From positions 426,665 through 434,277 of the forward strand of contig VRVR01000007.1 of NCBI GenBank assembly GCA_009859145.1: a stretch of DNA of 7,613 nt, given 5' to 3'. Each line of letters begins with the position of its first letter. Positions within the stretch are counted from its first letter, which is position 1. Both the position numbers and the translations under genes were made by a program. Positions 1-6,617 of the stretch are shown piece by piece. The DNA is from Andalucia godoyi And28. Lineage: Eukaryota; Protista; Jakobida. The notes below the pieces were generated by a model that saw nothing but the letters and a program-made list of their open reading frames with translations, was not told the origin of the DNA and did not search any database.

Positions 1-1272
1 ACGAGCTTCGTAGACATACCGTATACAACGAACGATAGAGCCCCATCGCGTTTTTCCGGGAAGAGCCAACATACAGACTTTCAGACTTTGTGCTTTAGTC
101 ATGAATATTTCTCGGATATTCTGATGACTACGAATGAACTTCGTGATCTTTGTCGCAATGAAAGACAACTCTGGCAAAGTGTACTGTCCAGGTTGAATGG
201 TATTCCAGCCTATTCCTCCTGCGATTTCAGATACATCTTCATCGGCATCATCATCTACAAGGGGGTTTTCCTCTTCTTCATCGTCAATACTCGGTAGAAT
301 CGCATCTGTCGACGTTTCTGGGACGGGGACTGCATTCTTGGGTCGTACAGCTCGAAATTTCTTTCCAAAAACATCATTGAAGAACAAGTTGAGCGCGTGA
401 CAATGACAACCAACAAAAATGACATGAGGATAGTCCTTCTTCAACATTTCGAATGCTTTTTTCATAACTGAAGCGTTGTCACTCACCACACCAGCCAGCT
501 TTGTCGCATTTCCAATGGAGGCAACCTGTTCAGCAATTTTATTTGCCACGTATTGAGCGTCCTTCTTATCGACGACGTTGTGAACTGCCTTGTAAAATAT
601 TGGCATGGGGGTCATTACTGCGAAGTTGGACAACGACTGGTTCCGGCAGTTGGACCATGCATCCGTTACTAACGTTACAAAGGGAGCTTTGTCAATTGTT
701 GTGCGAATTTCAGCCGTTACTGCGTCGAACAACTTGAAAAGCAGGGAATTCGAAATTGCAGAAGAAGATGGAATAGATAACTGATAGAAAGGTTGCAGGT
801 ACTTCTGAAAGAAGCGTTGGAGGAAGGGATGGCTCAACGACGAAAAGGGAAAGTTGAGTTCCACAAAAAGGCGACAGACATCCAGCCGAAACTCTTCAAC
901 TCGCGAAGTCTGATCCGCAACAGTGTTACGAATATCAAGCGTACCAGTAGTGGTCCTCATACGCTTCGCAGGATGGGCGATTGAAGAAGTGGAGGACGAC
1001 TCGCCGGATCCGATAGAGATTCCGTACTGCACATACTGCGAGGCATACTTCTCCAACTCTGATACGGGAAAGCGCTTAGCCATTGCAATCCTTGCCTCTT
1101 CAGTGGTCTGCGGACACACTCCTAAAAGAAAAATGTGATTGAACAATCGTTCAGGATGATCGCTAACGTGCTTGTCGCATTTGGGGCAAGTGTATTGTCG
1201 AAATTCCAGATTTCGAGCATTGTGCTTTTTCTCTTCTTTGTAGTATGCCTTGATCAACGATTTTGGGGGCAT
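1..1272 (-). CDS. hAT-superfamily transposase with N-terminal BED-type zinc finger; 3'-partial (424 codons, open to the window edge)
   Basis: Manual minus-strand translation from the ATG at 1272 (MPPKSLIKAYY...) has no stop down to base 1. Motifs seen: YTCPKCDKHVSDHPERLFNHIFLLGVCP (BED-like, 1188-1114), FVTLVTDAWSNCRNQSLSNF (first catalytic Asp, 663-661), VVSDNASVMKKA (second Asp, 480-478), GCHCHALNLFFND (CxxH motif, 408-397) and LPGKTRWGS (TRW motif, 51-37). The ORF track misses it because the stop lies outside the window. Confidence 0.93.
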   Translation of the reverse strand, partial: MPPKSLIKAYYKEEKKHNARNLEFRQYTCPKCDKHVSDHPERLFNHIFLLGVCPQTTEEARIAMAKRFPVSELEKYASQYVQYGISIGSGESSSTSSIAHPAKRMRTTTGTLDIRNTVADQTSRVEEFRLDVCRLFVELNFPFSSLSHPFLQRFFQKYLQPFYQLSIPSSSAISNSLLFKLFDAVTAEIRTTIDKAPFVTLVTDAWSNCRNQSLSNFAVMTPMPIFYKAVHNVVDKKDAQYVANKIAEQVASIGNATKLAGVVSDNASVMKKAFEMLKKDYPHVIFVGCHCHALNLFFNDVFGKKFRAVRPKNAVPVPETSTDAILPSIDDEEEENPLVDDDADEDVSEIAGGIGWNTIQPGQYTLPELSFIATKITKFIRSHQNIREIFMTKAQSLKVCMLALPGKTRWGSIVRCIRYVYEAR

Positions 1273-1661: not shown

Positions 1662-1862
1662 TTGGTTGGGCGTGTTTTTGGAAGGAATTGAGGCCGGACG
1701 CTGACATTTTTGAGACCGTAGACTCAAGTAAAGCGTTTTCACTAACAATTGGTATCGCCCGGCTCTGACAATTGCGATGTAGCCCGCGCGGCCGCGCCCT
1801 GCTCTCGCTTGGCCCCCGGCCACTTCCCGATAAGATCTGGATGCTTTGTTTTTTCGATTTTT
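1662..1862 (+). repeat. Left arm of a 201-bp inverted repeat (putative TIR/promoter)
   Basis: It matches the reverse complement of 4525-4725 without gaps, with 3 mismatches by manual alignment (aatt/aact, gccc/accc, atgc/atgt). It contains the perfect 12-bp palindrome GCGCGGCCGCGC (1786-1797) and ends in a T-rich tract. Confidence 0.97.
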
Positions 1863-1922: not shown

Positions 1923-3173
1923 ATGACCGAATCAACTGCTCCTTCGTATGTGATCGCACTTTCTGCGAAAGTCGCTGTGTCGCCGCTCAAGGACTCTGAA
2001 GGTCGCACGATTCAGTCTTTGTTTCCTACTCTCAAAGACAGTTACTTTTTCATTGTGTACTCGCATGATCCGGAAAAGGCGCGGCGAACTGTGGAGGTTC
2101 TCAAAGCTCAGCACTCTTCTTTGAATTGTGTTGCCGCAGATCGGGCTGCTGACTCTCCCTCTGGTGTCCGCCGTCACATCAGTCGATTGCTGCAAGCGAA
2201 TCCGCAGACTTGTGTGTTTGTCATCGGCACAGTAGACCAAGACTTATATATTGCCTCAAATACCAAAACTGCGTTGGTATACTTGAGCTGGGATAATGAA
2301 GTTGCAGCAACAGTGCGGCAATACGGAGCTGGAGCTTACGATTTCGACTCTCTGTCACGCTGGCTTGGTATCGTTACAACCCAAAATGTGTGGTTTGCAA
2401 CTTGTTCTTTTCCTGGATCTCAGTTGTCGACTGAGGTTCGCTGTCTCTGGCGCGCTAATACGATTCGTGTTCCAGAAGACGAAACCCGTGTCCTCGAAGG
2501 ATTTCAGAGTGCGTTGAAAGAAAATGGCGAGTTGCAACAGGAAATGCGATTCTTCCTGATAGCTGCGATCATGCATGAGCGTCCTTTATTTGATGAAGTT
2601 CAAGATTTTGGCATCGTTCCGTCGTCTGGCATGGAGCTCAATGAATCCATGCTAGGAATCAAAAACATGGTTCGGTGTCTCTTCGGCAAGAGACAGAAAG
2701 CTGAAAACATTCTTCGGCGCAATTTAAGCATCGCCTCTGCGCATAGATCGGGGACAACTCGAACTGTCGAGCGTCACTTTCCGTCTCTAGTTCTTGATGG
2801 GAAGTACGAAAAAAAACTGAAGAATCGCGTCATTTGTTTGTTCGACGATTTTCTCACTACCGGGGCGACGATGGAAGCTTGTCGTTTGCTGCTTCAATCC
2901 CAGAATCCAAAAAGGATCATTCTTGTGTCGTGCGGGAAATTTAGGAAGCAAGATGGAACGATGGATCATTATATAGAGAAGCGCGGTTTGAAACTAATTG
3001 GTAGCGTCTTCACTGGTGAGTATGAGTGTCAGTCTTCTGACACCGTTGCACCGGCCAGGCATGTTTTCCAGTTTGATGACAATGCTCGATCAGACATTTG
3101 CCGCGTTCGGCCATACTTGCCTCCTGATGCACAACAGCGACAAACAACGAATAACATGCATACGCGTACGTAA
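1923..3173 (+). CDS. HAD-like domain plus type I phosphoribosyltransferase fusion (ShosT-like architecture), 416 aa
   Basis: The PRPP-binding motif VICLFDDFLTTGAT (2829-2870) is followed by MEACRLLL...IILVSCGK. The N-terminal CVFVIGTVDQDLYIASNTKTALVYLSW resembles HAD motif IV. The first in-frame ATG is at 1923; the track's TTG start at 1749 lies inside the inverted repeat. PRTase confidence is high; the HAD-like call is moderate. Confidence 0.85.
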   Translation: MTESTAPSYVIALSAKVAVSPLKDSEGRTIQSLFPTLKDSYFFIVYSHDPEKARRTVEVLKAQHSSLNCVAADRAADSPSGVRRHISRLLQANPQTCVFVIGTVDQDLYIASNTKTALVYLSWDNEVAATVRQYGAGAYDFDSLSRWLGIVTTQNVWFATCSFPGSQLSTEVRCLWRANTIRVPEDETRVLEGFQSALKENGELQQEMRFFLIAAIMHERPLFDEVQDFGIVPSSGMELNESMLGIKNMVRCLFGKRQKAENILRRNLSIASAHRSGTTRTVERHFPSLVLDGKYEKKLKNRVICLFDDFLTTGATMEACRLLLQSQNPKRIILVSCGKFRKQDGTMDHYIEKRGLKLIGSVFTGEYECQSSDTVAPARHVFQFDDNARSDICRVRPYLPPDAQQRQTTNNMHTRT

Positions 3174-3517
3174 AAAAACAAGCAAACCAAATGGGACAGA
3201 AACGAGGCTGTGTAAGATTAATACACTAAATTGTTCAGACACTGACTTTTAAGACACTGGTTAGAGCAGCAGCCACAGTCGGCTCGTGTTTTCTTTGTTT
3301 CAAACATCCTTTAGTATTTCTTCTTTTTCCACGCGATACCAACATACGTGGCCCCTGCCACGATACGCAAAGACACACGACGTTTTCCCGCAGCGCAATC
3401 ACCCGACGCTGAGTCACCGCAGGGCACGTCTGGGCCGTCCGCACCGGGTCGTTGTTCTTGCGGCAATTTGACGCAACACTCGTGGTTCGTATCAAATCCT
3501 CAGTCTTTCGATTGCCT

Positions 3518-4486
3518 TCACGCAAGTTTGAAGAATTTTGCAATGTGACCGGTTTGTCCCACGGATTTCATGTCTCTTTTCTGATTGGGACGACTTCGTT
3601 CGTTGATGGTCGAAAAGTGAGTGTTGCAATTCCGCAGGACAGCCGTCAAATCCTGTCTCTGACCACGGCTCATCACGTTTCCTATCGCTCCGAAACCAAC
3701 TTCCGACAGCTCGCGCGTGCCGATCCCGGCATACTTCCCTGTTGGCGTTGGAATATCTTCTAAACGAGCATTGCACCACACAAATTCGGGACCGTTCCTA
3801 TTACTTTCTATCACAATAGCACCTTGAAACCACTGACGCTTGGACGCTTGTTCAAACAAATAAACAGGCAACCGACGAAAATACGGGACTGTGCGGTTTG
3901 AAGACAGTTCTGCCCACAAGCGAAGAACAAACATCTGTACAGCCCATGCAGTTCCGCCTAGAAGACCAACGTAAAGGCCGCGACTAGCCGAAAACGCATC
4001 ATGGTCACAAGATCGAACAGAGGAACAGAACGATGAGACCGCGTAGACAGAAGAAACGGTCTGAATTTGGAAAAAATCCCTCAATAGCAAATTTCGAACA
4101 TACGTACCACGTGCACTTGATTCATTCATATTGGGGGGTCGTCGACAAAGCACTGCAGCTGCTTCGATGACCGCACCTCGAGCGCTAGAGACTAATTCAG
4201 TGTTTGACAGAAGTCGAATAGATTCTTCGCGCATGTCTTGATAGATACAATTTCCTGCACCAAGAAAAACAAGATGTGCAATTCTATGACCCAAAAAGGA
4301 CATAACTTGCACTTTATGGCCATAAAAATATGCAAGAGACTCCCATACAACATCAGAACCCTCAGCACCTCCAGTAAAGAGGACAGGAACATCTCTTGCC
4401 GAATCATCTGAATTGAGCGAGGACAGCACACGGTCTATCTCGTCAGCGAACAAAGGACTGTTGATTTCATCCAGCAAAGAACACAT
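3518..4486 (-). CDS. SLOG-superfamily (Smf/DprA-LOG fold) putative nucleotide-binding protein, 322 aa
   Basis: The glycine-rich motif LFTGGAEGSDVVWE (TGGAEGSD at 4375-4352) matches the SLOG (S/T)GGAxGxD loop. Further family-like motifs are RNLLLRDFFQI, LGGTAWAVQMF, PVYLFEQ and KYAGIGTR (YAGIGTR at 3733-3713). The ATG lies 39 bp from the inner end of the right repeat. Confidence 0.75.
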   Translation of the reverse strand: MCSLLDEINSPLFADEIDRVLSSLNSDDSARDVPVLFTGGAEGSDVVWESLAYFYGHKVQVMSFLGHRIAHLVFLGAGNCIYQDMREESIRLLSNTELVSSARGAVIEAAAVLCRRPPNMNESSARGTYVRNLLLRDFFQIQTVSSVYAVSSFCSSVRSCDHDAFSASRGLYVGLLGGTAWAVQMFVLRLWAELSSNRTVPYFRRLPVYLFEQASKRQWFQGAIVIESNRNGPEFVWCNARLEDIPTPTGKYAGIGTRELSEVGFGAIGNVMSRGQRQDLTAVLRNCNTHFSTINERSRPNQKRDMKSVGQTGHIAKFFKLA

Positions 4487-4524: not shown

Positions 4525-4725
4525 AAAAATCGAAAAAACAAAACATCCAGATCTTATCGGGAAGTGGCCGGGGGCCAAGCGAGAGCAGGGCGCGGCCGCG
4601 CGGGCTACATCGCAATTGTCAGAGCCGGGTGATACCAGTTGTTAGTGAAAACGCTTTACTTGAGTCTACGGTCTCAAAAATGTCAGCGTCCGGCCTCAAT
4701 TCCTTCCAAAAACACGCCCAACCAA
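4525..4725 (-). repeat. Right arm of the 201-bp inverted repeat
   Basis: It is the reverse complement of 1662-1862 with 3 mismatches. The palindrome GCGCGGCCGCGC lies at 4590-4601. Confidence 0.97.
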
Positions 4726-5165
4726 CAATGCGCCTCAGCTGGCTCAGCCAATTCAGCAAAGACTGAGGACTCTCAGCCTCGCTCGGAATAAATCTCTCGA
4801 GCAATGGACACCTGCGCCTTATCAAACATGAGCAACTTATCTGACGCAGCACCGTCTGTCGAACACGAAGACGAGTTTGAGCCGTTTACGATATTACTAC
4901 TGTCCGCGAGTGGTACAGTATCAGTACCCGAGGTTACCGTGTCGTGCAAGTTGCATGTCGTTGGGGTGAATGGCTGGTACCCCGAGTGCTGGGATCTTTC
5001 CAAGCGAATCGTTTCTGCGGATACCTACTCGCAGCGTCTCTTGAAGGCAGCGTCCCTTGTCTCTGTGGATCTGTTACAATGCAATCTCAAGCCAAAAGGA
5101 ATGCCCGAGAAAACATGGAAGCTGGTCATCAGAGGAGATTCCCCGGATTCCACCATGTCGAATAG

Positions 5166-6168
5166 TGTTACAACCCCGACCGTTGTTTCTCATCAAGCGT
5201 ACATCTGTCCTTCAAGAATGCTGGAGTATTTGTGGTCCTCCATCAACTCCAGAACGGGTGGGAAGCCCACGAAACGACGCGGAGGCGACGTGGAGTATTG
5301 GCTGTGCCCGTTTGGAAGAGAATCTCGGAAAGGGAAGGAAGGAGTGAAGGGCGTTCGGGCAACGGAGTATGTACGTGCACATGTCCTGCGTTTGTGGAAA
5401 AGGATGTTCCGTGGTGCAAACACATGGCGTTCTGCGCCGCTGAGGATAGTGTCGACGCCTTATATTATCCTTCTCTTCAGGACAACATGTAGACAGTGGT
5501 GGATGAGATGCTCAAATGGGCACAGCGGGAGAACGGAGCCATGGGTGAAAGCAATGCATGTACGGATGTATTTCGATCAATGAGCGAATACTGGGCTCAT
5601 TGGGATGACCAACGGCATATCCAAGAAGGTGGTCAGGTCGACGAACAGCAGACAGAAGCGCCCGTTGAAGATGCAAGGCCATGTGGCTCTGGCACATTTC
5701 AACTTCCGGCACCTCAAGATGTATGGAAAGCACGGGAACGAGCTCGAGGAAACTTGCAACGGCTCACGAGCTCGAGGAAACTTGCAACGGCTCACGAGAG
5801 AACTCAGTGTGATTGACATACGCGCTCCGGCTGTGCTTGGTTACCTTGATGATCTGGACCGCACACTGTCTGCGCAAACAGTGCCGCCCTCACTTCATCT
5901 ACCAGTTGCTTCTAACTATCATGGCTGTATTCGTCCAGCAGCCGGTTTTGAACGCACGCAAAAGAAACGTGGAAGAAAGAAAGCCGATCAAAGTGAGGAG
6001 TTTGTAAGGTGGAATACAGATTTGGATGTGGACGAGATGTGCAGGGCGTGGTCCGAGAGACAGGAGGTAACACAAGCTCGAGCCCCGCCAAAAAAGAAGC
6101 GGCGGGCAGAGGCGTTTTCTCAGATTACTTCACAAGGAAAACAAGAATACTCTGAAAAGGGAATGTAA
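5166..6168 (+). pseudogene. Decayed SWIM zinc-finger gene, probably the C-terminal part of a Mutator-like (MULE) transposase; the 5' boundary is uncertain
   Basis: The SWIM motif CTCTCPAFVEKDVPWCKH (CxC...CxH) lies at 5370-5423. Track ORFs 4944-5165, 5232-5492 and 5496-5816 share one frame separated by TAG stops (5163, 5490). Removing one copy of the 28-bp duplication joins this frame to ORF 5605-6168, which has NLS-like KKRGRKK and PPKKKRR. The MULE assignment is inferred, as no DDE core was recognised. Confidence 0.6.
5738..5798 (+). repeat. Perfect 28-bp tandem duplication causing a frameshift
   Basis: CGAGCTCGAGGAAACTTGCAACGGCTCA occurs at 5739-5766 and 5767-5794. The peptide RARGNLQRLT appears in two different frames in the ORF track. 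Confidence 0.97.
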
Positions 6169-6255: not shown

Positions 6256-6271
6256 TTAGGGTTTAGGGTTT
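6256..6271 (+). repeat. Short telomere-like repeat (TTAGGGTTTAGGGTTT)
   Basis: About two TTTAGGG units are followed by a T run. Its function is unknown. Confidence 0.5.
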
Positions 6272-6537
6272 GGTTTTTTTTTACGCCAGGAGGAGTTAGC
6301 TCAAAATTCAAAACGCGCTAACGCGAGTTCGCATAGAGTAAATTTAAATTATCTCACTTTCTGCTGCAAGACGTTCTTTCAAATTGCACGCAGCTGAATA
6401 TCATGCAAAAACGCACAAATACGGAAAATGGTCCACAGCACCTTTTCTGAGGTAGTGCTGGGGACTGGTAGAGTCGGGGACGGCGAGCAATCTGGCACAC
6501 GAACACTATTGGACAAAAATGTCACCGAATTTTTTTA

Positions 6538-6617
6538 GAGACGCCCCTGTGACGCATCGGTGATCTTGTGACATTGATCCTCTTGCTAGGATCACCGAAG
6601 CGTCACAGGCGCGTCTC
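6538..6617. repeat. 28-bp subterminal inverted repeat (hairpin) with a 24-nt loop
   Basis: GAGACGCCCCTGTGACGCATCGGTGATC (6538-6565) pairs with GATCACCGAAGCGTCACAGGCGCGTCTC (6590-6617), with 2 mismatches. Confidence 0.93.

Follow-up and report, generated by a model that had tools for sequence, protein, structure and literature searches.

A ShosT-family gene and a DprA-like partner in the jakobid Andalucia godoyi: a candidate partner-swapped ShosTA module in a eukaryote

Introduction

ShosTA is an anti-phage toxin-antitoxin (TA) system of type IV, described in Escherichia coli (PDB 8zvb-8zvd; PADLOC PDLC03962/PDLC03961), in which the toxin, ShosT, links phosphoribosyltransferase (PRTase) and pyrophosphatase activities (PMC11961720). 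In the literature searched, the system is described only in bacteria and archaea, and no report of eukaryotic ShosT relatives was found. The present analysis concerns two convergent genes in a stretch of 7,613 nucleotides from the jakobid Andalucia godoyi And28 (assembly GCA_009859145.1, contig VRVR01000007.1, positions 426,665 to 434,277 of the forward strand), referred to below as the window. Gene 1 encodes a ShosT-family protein, and gene 2 a member of a mostly phage-borne family of DprA-like proteins. We put at roughly 55% the probability that the two genes form a eukaryotic toxin-antidote module of the ShosTA kind, in which the partner of the toxin has been swapped.

Related combinations of proteins are known from other contexts. 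For example, PsyrTA consists of a PRTase-containing toxin, PsyrT, and the DprA-like PsyrA, while the competence proteins DprA/Smf and ComFC are, respectively, a single-stranded DNA (ssDNA)-binding RecA loader and a PRTase-fold protein, which act on incoming DNA. In ShosA and DprA, the N-terminal SAM domain and the C-terminal extension serve in dimerisation and in the contact with RecA.

Gene 1, a ShosT-family protein

The product of gene 1 has an N-terminal HAD-like hydrolase domain of the pyrophosphatase type and a C-terminal PRTase domain. The PADLOC profile of ShosT (PDLC03962) matches residues 123-346 with an E value of 1.6e-26, and Pfam gives a sub-threshold match to a PRTase and nothing else. 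A word-indexed homologue search with gene 1 returned no relatives; an exhaustive search returned 188, of about 385 amino acids and alignable over the full length, the best of which all match the PADLOC ShosT profile, at 1e-33 to 1e-49. The family profile, built from the window protein and 27 of these relatives, matches the ShosT crystal structure 8zvb at 2.2e-25, through both the hydrolase and the PRTase domains.

The fold gives the same result. The AlphaFold2 model of gene 1 (pLDDT 88) has the three ShosT structures 8zvc, 8zvd and 8zvb as its top three Foldseek matches in the PDB (E ~1e-14, TM-score 0.63-0.67), on which it is superposed across 441-462 alignment columns, and the next structural match of the PRTase fold is the ComF protein of Helicobacter pylori. 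Within the loop that binds phosphoribosyl pyrophosphate (PRPP), D308/D309 are the counterparts of D331/D332 in E. coli ShosT, in columns that are invariant in 55 sequences, and the substitutions D331A/D332A abolish the toxicity of ShosT (PMC11961720). Gene 1 also keeps 26 of the 29 highly conserved columns of its family.

By sequence profile, by profile match to a solved structure and by fold, gene 1 is a ShosT-family HAD-like/PRTase protein, and each of the sequence and structure tests for ShosT came out positive. Its enzyme chemistry is presumably that of the characterised ShosT. The initial annotation, which had been made from the DNA letters without database searches, had described a HAD-like/PRTase fusion resembling ShosT, and this description is upheld by the profile, crystal-structure and Foldseek matches alike.

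Gene 2, a DprA-like protein with a probably permuted core

Gene 2 is a member of a mostly phage-borne, unannotated DprA-like family with a putative SLOG-type Rossmannoid fold, and is not a canonical ShosA. Searches of Pfam, PADLOC and NCBIfam gave no match to it. The 15 homologues found, most of which have about 190-200 amino acids, carry the family motifs GGAxGSD, RRN, GGTxWAxQM and AGIGTR; the family, which is encoded in 185 loci of IMG/VR, occurs frequently in T4-like and jumbo phages, and among annotated proteins, those nearest to gene 2 are from phages. The phage profile phrog_768 ('DprA-like') is matched by the homologues at 1e-13 to 1e-14, and by the window protein at only 0.015. Relative to the phage members of about 190 amino acids, gene 2 has eukaryote-specific insertions and a C-terminal tail of 48 amino acids, and it keeps 32 of the 34 highly conserved columns of the family.

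The AlphaFold2 model of gene 2 (pLDDT 78) consists of alternating strands and helices with glycine-rich loops. In BFVD, it finds strong matches among phage proteins, the best being a protein of the Agrobacterium phage Atu_ph07 (E 1.5e-13), together with weak matches to a viral 'DprA' (6e-3) and to a molybdenum cofactor carrier (0.13), both of which are annotated as families of the SLOG superfamily. A sequence-profile search of the PDB returned spurious TRAP and SDR matches only. The Pfam models of two other SLOG families, cpYpsA (PF12694) and YAcAr (PF10686), match neither gene 2 nor its 15 homologues at E values of up to 1, and the sole match to these models, that of the relative from the brachiopod Lingula, is insignificant (0.19).

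The order of the motifs in DprA, i.e., VGTR, SGxAxGID, RNR and SGT, is not kept in the gene 2 family, in which all four motifs are present and the VGTR-type strand is C-terminal (Table 1). In a first profile-profile run, made with three ShosA sequences, the C-terminal GTR segment aligned alone, at a probability of 6.6%, with its AGIGTR portion paired with the first strand of the Rossmann domain of ShosA. Given this pairing, a permutation test was run, in which the alignment of the gene 2 family was doubled in tandem and compared, by means of hhalign, with a ShosA profile made from the proteins of bacterial and prophage ShosTA loci. The linear comparison reaches a probability of 11% (score 31), with the motifs weakly aligned in the expected register. 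The permuted comparison reaches 90% (E 1.6e-6, score 56.5) over 139 columns, which run from the C-terminus of copy one into copy two, and the controls (reversed ShosA, 20 column shuffles and the unrelated gene 1 family) score 10-19.

The permuted match spans only positions 124-262 of ShosA. The SAM and C-terminal domains of ShosA and DprA are without counterpart in the gene 2 family, the typical members of which consist of the core alone. Judged from these alignments, the family is probably a homologous core of the DprA type, with its first strand and helix relocated to the C-terminus.

Two arginines that are invariant in the family deserve mention, although their equivalence comes from the profile alignment and not from a DNA-bound structure. 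R258 of gene 2 is the putative counterpart of R52 in H. pylori DprA and of R139 in ShosA, and R136 that of R143 and R234, respectively. The family consensus at R136-D137 is RN, where the window has RD, and the R143-N144 pair of H. pylori DprA forms part of the base pocket (PMC3950713). The pocket arginines of DprA and ShosA bind ssDNA and are needed for the activity of the antitoxin (PMC3950713; PMC12961424).

Recurrence of the pairing

In bacteria and prophages, the relatives of gene 1 have a canonical ShosA as their neighbour (11/11 loci examined), which belongs to PF02481 and, in six proteins that were scanned, matches the PADLOC ShosA profile at 1e-66 to 1e-84, and the gene 2 family is found at none of these 11 loci. 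The pairing of a ShosT with a member of the gene 2 family was found solely in eukaryote-like contigs. In a metagenome contig with 59% GC (locus L103), a ShosT-like gene (361-1914, +) faces a member of the gene 2 family (3375-2080, -) in convergent arrangement, as in the window. In Lingula anatina (scaffold LFEI02000828.1), the multi-exon gene of a ShosT-like protein (LOC106159475, XP_013391222.1) and a single-exon member of the gene 2 family, which has all of the motifs (LOC106159476, XP_013391223.1; hidden Markov model (HMM) E value 7e-63), are consecutive genes in divergent orientation, with 3 kb between them. The pairing has more than one instance, and the co-occurrence of homologues elsewhere, which the initial annotation had named as a check on its proposal, is provided by both of these loci.

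In L103, a second copy of ShosT, with an internal deletion of ~1.3 kb, comes after the pair. Segments 1-186 and 3275-3460 of this contig are 98% identical, as are segments 1522-1806 and 3457-3738, and it contains a tandem duplication in which one toxin copy has decayed.

A different partner is found in a bacterial-looking contig with 59% GC (L117, 4875-7056), in which a ShosT-like protein (P0052), placed near gene 1 in the tree, is encoded divergently from a YAcAr SLOG protein of 195 amino acids (4.5e-18). This locus may be another partner-swapped variant of ShosTA. Taken together, the window, L103, Lingula and L117 indicate that the SLOG partners of ShosT-type proteins are of several kinds, and SLOG-PRTase gene pairs, such as those of YpsA with PRTases, have been recognised as recurring (PMC6459960).

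Among named proteins, those closest to gene 1 come from eukaryotes, namely animals and other holozoans: Montipora capricornis (XP_068734364.1, 36% identity), Lingula, Saccoglossus kowalevskii (XP_002731396.1), Limulus polyphemus (XP_013790602.1) and the unicellular holozoan Pigoraptor chileana. In coral-type contigs, Saccoglossus and Lingula, the coding sequence is interrupted at one shared profile position, 198/199, which corresponds roughly to residue 215 of the window protein (loci L102, L105, L107, L110, L111, L113 and L116), an interruption that looks like a conserved intron, and the animal and holozoan ShosT-like genes as a whole look like an unannotated gene family. For both proteins, the window clusters with L103 in neighbour-joining trees, which carry no support values, and the animal ShosT-like proteins form a cluster that neighbours them. 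A eukaryotic setting of the pair is supported.

Possible function of the pair

The family assignments, the intact motifs, the eukaryotic setting and the recurrence of the pair are established here, and a mechanism can be proposed on this basis. The PRTase domain of gene 1 would use PRPP and the HAD-like domain would remove the pyrophosphate product, a combination which, in bacteria, disrupts purine metabolism as well as DNA replication and leads to cell death or arrest. Gene 2 would stand in for ShosA, and would most likely, as ShosA does, neutralise the damage without binding the toxin, by way of its conserved nucleotide or ssDNA pocket. A virtually identical block of 201 nucleotides upstream of each gene would be a duplicated promoter, co-expressing toxin and antidote in the place of an operon, and the toxin would prevail whenever expression was shut off or the antidote was lost, for example, during infection by a virus. 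The toxicity of gene 1, the rescue by gene 2, the action of the repeat as a promoter and the trigger are all presumed in this scheme; for gene 2, the antidote role is suggested by the homology to the ShosA core and by the recurrent pairing. A role of the pair in defence would be speculation.

Several results weigh against a toxin-antidote module of this kind. Gene 2 matches neither the PADLOC ShosA profile nor the Pfam DNA_processg_A model, a ShosA HMM made from 10 bacterial and prophage neighbours finds nothing in the window, and the Foldseek search of the gene 2 model against the PDB, a method that is blind to permutations, gives no match below an E value of 0.02. As gene 2 is without the SAM and C-terminal domains, a rescue linked to RecA or Rad51 may not apply. 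No ShosT was found within ~5 kb of the gene 2 family in 85 phage and metagenome loci, and many eukaryote-like ShosT relatives have no visible partner in the available flanks, as in Saccoglossus (L113, which includes 7 kb of N) and in a coral-type contig (L102). A eukaryotic locus with gelsolin and coronin-like neighbours (L114) has a relative of gene 2 with no ShosT nearby, and the Lingula partner falls, in the neighbour-joining tree, in a different, phage-rich subclade from gene 2 of the window.

Given these results, the initial annotation of the pair can be retained only in part. It had taken gene 2 for a counterpart of ShosA, to be recognised by PADLOC profiles and by structure models. By the permuted comparison, gene 2 is probably a SLOG-type relative of DprA, but it is not ShosA, and it is gene 1 alone that both the PADLOC profiles and the structure models, by their ShosT matches, place in the system. 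The annotation had also suggested a ShosTA-like system acquired horizontally or assembled convergently, of which the eukaryotic setting and the ShosT-type toxin stand. As gene 2 belongs to a separate, mainly phage-borne, probably permuted family, the module is best read as a partner-swapped variant and not as a transferred ShosTA operon.

The main rival, which we consider a good deal less probable than the toxin-antidote reading, is a pair engaged in nucleotide metabolism or signalling, in which PRPP would be turned by gene 1 into an unusual nucleotide, which gene 2 would bind, sense or process, with neither gene product being toxic at native levels. The phage context of the gene 2 family, surveyed in L001 and in the IMG/VR loci L017-L096, speaks for it: the family gene commonly lies directly after the gene of a T4-type deoxynucleoside monophosphate (dNMP) kinase, which accounts for 27 of the 88 immediate neighbours and overlaps the family gene in L001 (5372-6612). 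This neighbourhood points to nucleotide metabolism rather than to antitoxin duty, and counts as a further argument against a toxin-antidote module. The animal ShosT-like genes with conserved introns also look long-resident, and sometimes have no visible partner. On the other hand, the motifs of gene 2 (RN, GTR) fit the ssDNA pocket of DprA, and not the catalytic motif of the LOG hydrolases, which is PGGxGTxxE. The SLOG superfamily does include members that process or sense nucleotides, as YpsA-PRTase pairs are thought to do (PMC6459960; PMC7824862), but the members of the ShosT family characterised so far are all toxins that rely on the DD motif, and this motif is present in gene 1 (PMC11961720; PMC12961424).

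Two further features of the phage members may be recorded. The next commonest neighbour of the family gene is a PTH2-like peptidyl-tRNA hydrolase (9/88), and domains of the gene 2 type are also found inside giant phage open reading frames (ORFs) of 1260-2822 amino acids (L066, L067, L083, L093 and L095), one of which (L066, 2046-10514) carries the domains of an N4-type virion RNA polymerase. By analogy with polyvalent proteins, this context suggests that the domain may enter the host cell together with the phage DNA.

The inverted repeat and the surrounding DNA

The features of the locus are collected in Table 1. Both genes are intact, and they are considered to be intronless here because each aligns end to end, without a break, to its own family profile (HMM positions 5-381 in gene 1 and 7-236 in gene 2). 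The initial annotation had seen two intact, intronless genes, a HAD-like/PRTase fusion and a SLOG-type protein, with separate convergent genes in the place of the bacterial operon; the ORFs and the alignments agree with it, and each gene lies, tail to tail with the other, behind its own repeat arm. The spacer between them contains a weak tandem repeat of 16 nucleotides at 3218-3259, and no signal of the AATAAA type was found in it.

Table 1. Coordinates of the principal features of the window (position 1 is its first letter).
Feature	Position	Strand	Remark
hAT-family transposase, 5' part	1-1272	-	intact-looking; Pfam DUF659, 7.9e-17; continues past the left edge of the window
Left repeat arm	1662-1862	.	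201 nt; inner end 61 nt upstream of the gene 1 ATG
Gene 1	1923-3173	+	ATG to TAA, 416 aa, intronless
PRPP-binding loop VICLFDDFLTTGATME of gene 1	2829-2876	+	D308/D309 at 2844-2849
Tail-to-tail spacer	3174-3517	.	344 nt; presumably houses the 3' ends of both genes
Gene 2	4486-3518	-	ATG to TGA, 322 aa, intronless
AGIGTR motif of gene 2, near the C-terminus	3713-3730	-	aligns with the VGTR first strand of ShosA/DprA; permuted segment
GGTAWAVQM motif of gene 2	3932-3958	-	aligns with SGTMHT of ShosA/DprA
R136-D137 of gene 2	4076-4081	-	aligns with RN of the DprA 'RNR' motif
GGAEGSD glycine-rich loop of gene 2	4352-4372	-	aligns with SGLAxGID of ShosA/DprA
Right repeat arm	4525-4725	.	inner end 39 nt upstream of the gene 2 ATG (minus strand)
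Borderline SWIM zinc finger, right flank	~5361-5429		19.0 bits against a cut-off of 19.6

The two repeat arms are inverted relative to each other and identical, free of gaps, at 198 of 201 positions, with no longer inverted repeat found beyond them. The space between them holds gene 1, gene 2 and the spacer, and nothing else. From their geometry, the arms fit a duplicated promoter or upstream regulatory block better than the ends of a transposon, given that they end just upstream of the start codons and that no target-site duplication of 2-9 bp was found between the flanks AAAACGCCC and CAATGCGCC at their outer ends. A 12-nucleotide palindrome, GCGCGGCCGCGC, lies centrally in each arm (1786-1797 and 4590-4601), and might serve as a protein-binding site of the putative shared promoter.

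These arms are also the starting point of a second alternative, namely, that the pair is the cargo of a non-autonomous, Pack-MULE-like DNA transposon with long terminal inverted repeats, which it would stabilise as a selfish addiction module. We regard this as somewhat less probable again than a nucleotide-metabolism pair. It is favoured by repeats of 99% identity that bracket exactly the two genes, by surroundings of transposon debris, with a hAT transposase and the borderline SWIM finger, and by the tandemly duplicated unit of L103, which is mobile in some sense. It is opposed by the missing target-site duplication, by the absence of any further copy of the repeat from the window and from the 117 fetched loci, by the pairs of L103 and Lingula, which have no such bracketing repeats, and by inner arm ends that lie 39-61 nucleotides from the start codons, as promoters would. 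The repeats and the two genes as their only cargo, as first annotated, are real; the transposon picture drawn from them is not supported.

The window has ~48% GC, with no compositional break, and gene 1, gene 2 and the flanking hAT gene resemble each other both in GC by codon position and in codon usage. Given this agreement, nothing points to a chimeric bacterial insert, the presence of which would have told against the initial annotation. That the two genes are adjacent through bacterial, phage or viral contamination or mis-assembly, or are two decaying, horizontally acquired genes side by side by chance, could be argued from the phage affinities of the nearest annotated relatives of gene 2 and from the lack of an exact match to either protein in the public gene collection, but is very improbable in view of a composition that is uniform over both genes, the spacers and the hAT gene, of two intact ORFs with conserved motifs, of named eukaryotic relatives of gene 1, several with introns, and of the same pairing in two other independent places; contamination, in particular, is unlikely given the composition, the context and the eukaryotic relatives.

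Among the neighbouring elements, the initial annotation had listed hAT, CACTA and SWIM types. The hAT gene is certain, with its start codon 390 nucleotides from the left repeat arm, and the SWIM finger is borderline; a CACTA/EnSpm domain was not confirmed by family searches of the window. The ORFs at 4804-5583, 5232-5492 and 5496-5816 overlap in different frames around the SWIM finger, and look like a frameshifted remnant of a transposase of the Mutator-like (MULE)/FAR1 type.

Further to the right, an ORF of 187 amino acids (5605-6168), which has no family match, includes a 28-nucleotide unit, ACGAGCTCGAGGAAACTTGCAACGGCTC, perfectly duplicated in tandem at 5738-5793. A 28-nucleotide inverted repeat (6538-6617), 93% complementary and with a 24-nucleotide spacer, forms a strong, non-coding hairpin or palindrome between the right-hand ORFs and a minus-strand ORF of 299 amino acids. 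Short telomere-like TTTAGGG repeats, GGGTTTAGGGTTTGG, followed by a run of T, are found at 6259-6285, with one CCCTAAA-type unit on the left side (1501-1510), and are possibly interstitial telomeric sequence or the end of an element. Scans for Rfam families and tRNA genes found none in the window, and the window as a whole has no nucleotide similarity to any of the 117 fetched loci.

Significance

The toxin-antidote pair, if read correctly, seems to represent the adoption of a bacterial defence module by a eukaryote. Several bacterial defence systems have eukaryotic descendants, for example, cGAS-STING, viperin, gasdermin, TIR and Argonaute. A two-gene TA system of abortive infection that has been kept paired in eukaryotes would, if true, be a different kind of case. 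A bolder and clearly more doubtful proposal is that the ShosT-like and permuted DprA-like proteins are a functional PRPP-based immune module that eukaryotes have housed for a long time (the organism of the window as well as corals, a brachiopod, a hemichordate, a horseshoe crab and a unicellular holozoan), the toxin-antidote counterpart of bacterial abortive infection, with identical duplicated promoters replacing the operon, and that the phage homologues, some of them injected with the virion, are antidote mimics which disarm defences of the ShosT type.

The locus also provides material for experiments: a eukaryotic pair free of introns, a pair of named animal genes from Lingula, and mutants with single-residue changes that are predicted to abolish each of the activities. 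The gene 2 family, newly defined here, is an unannotated and probably circularly permuted DprA core in T4-like and jumbo phages and in giant virion proteins, and may bear on how phages handle nucleotide-based defences.

Comparison with known systems

The competence proteins DprA/Smf and ComFC have the same two folds as gene 2 and gene 1. Unlike them, the window pair has no competence context, and gene 1, which has an added HAD-like domain, groups with ShosT rather than with ComF.

The phage family phrog_768, annotated as a 'DprA-like DNA recombination-mediator', together with its fusions in giant virion proteins, is the family of gene 2 by sequence, with the same motifs. Its phage members have ~190 amino acids and lie beside dNMP kinase rather than ShosT, whereas the window protein has 322 amino acids, with its insertions and C-terminal tail.

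The SLOG-PRTase pairs, i.e., YpsA-PRTase, the YAcAr pair of L117 and PsyrTA, follow the same theme of a protein with a PRTase domain and a partner from the SLOG superfamily. The L117 locus, in particular, illustrates that ShosA is not the only SLOG protein with which a gene closely related to gene 1 can be paired. The gene 2 family differs from YAcAr and cpYpsA in matching neither of their Pfam models, and PsyrT has a helicase region, which gene 1 lacks.

ShosTA differs from the window pair in several respects. Its formal definition, a ShosT adjoining a ShosA (PF02481), does not extend to the pair, in which the partner fails the ShosA and DprA profiles, is without the SAM and C-terminal domains and is probably circularly permuted. 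The ShosTA genes form an operon, whereas those of the window are convergent (those of Lingula, divergent) and have separate upstream regions; the host here is eukaryotic, and some of the relatives have introns. On the other hand, the window shares with ShosTA the two-domain architecture, fold and DD motif of the toxin, the organisation as a two-gene unit, and a small DprA-type Rossmann partner that keeps putative counterparts of the arginines of the ssDNA pocket.

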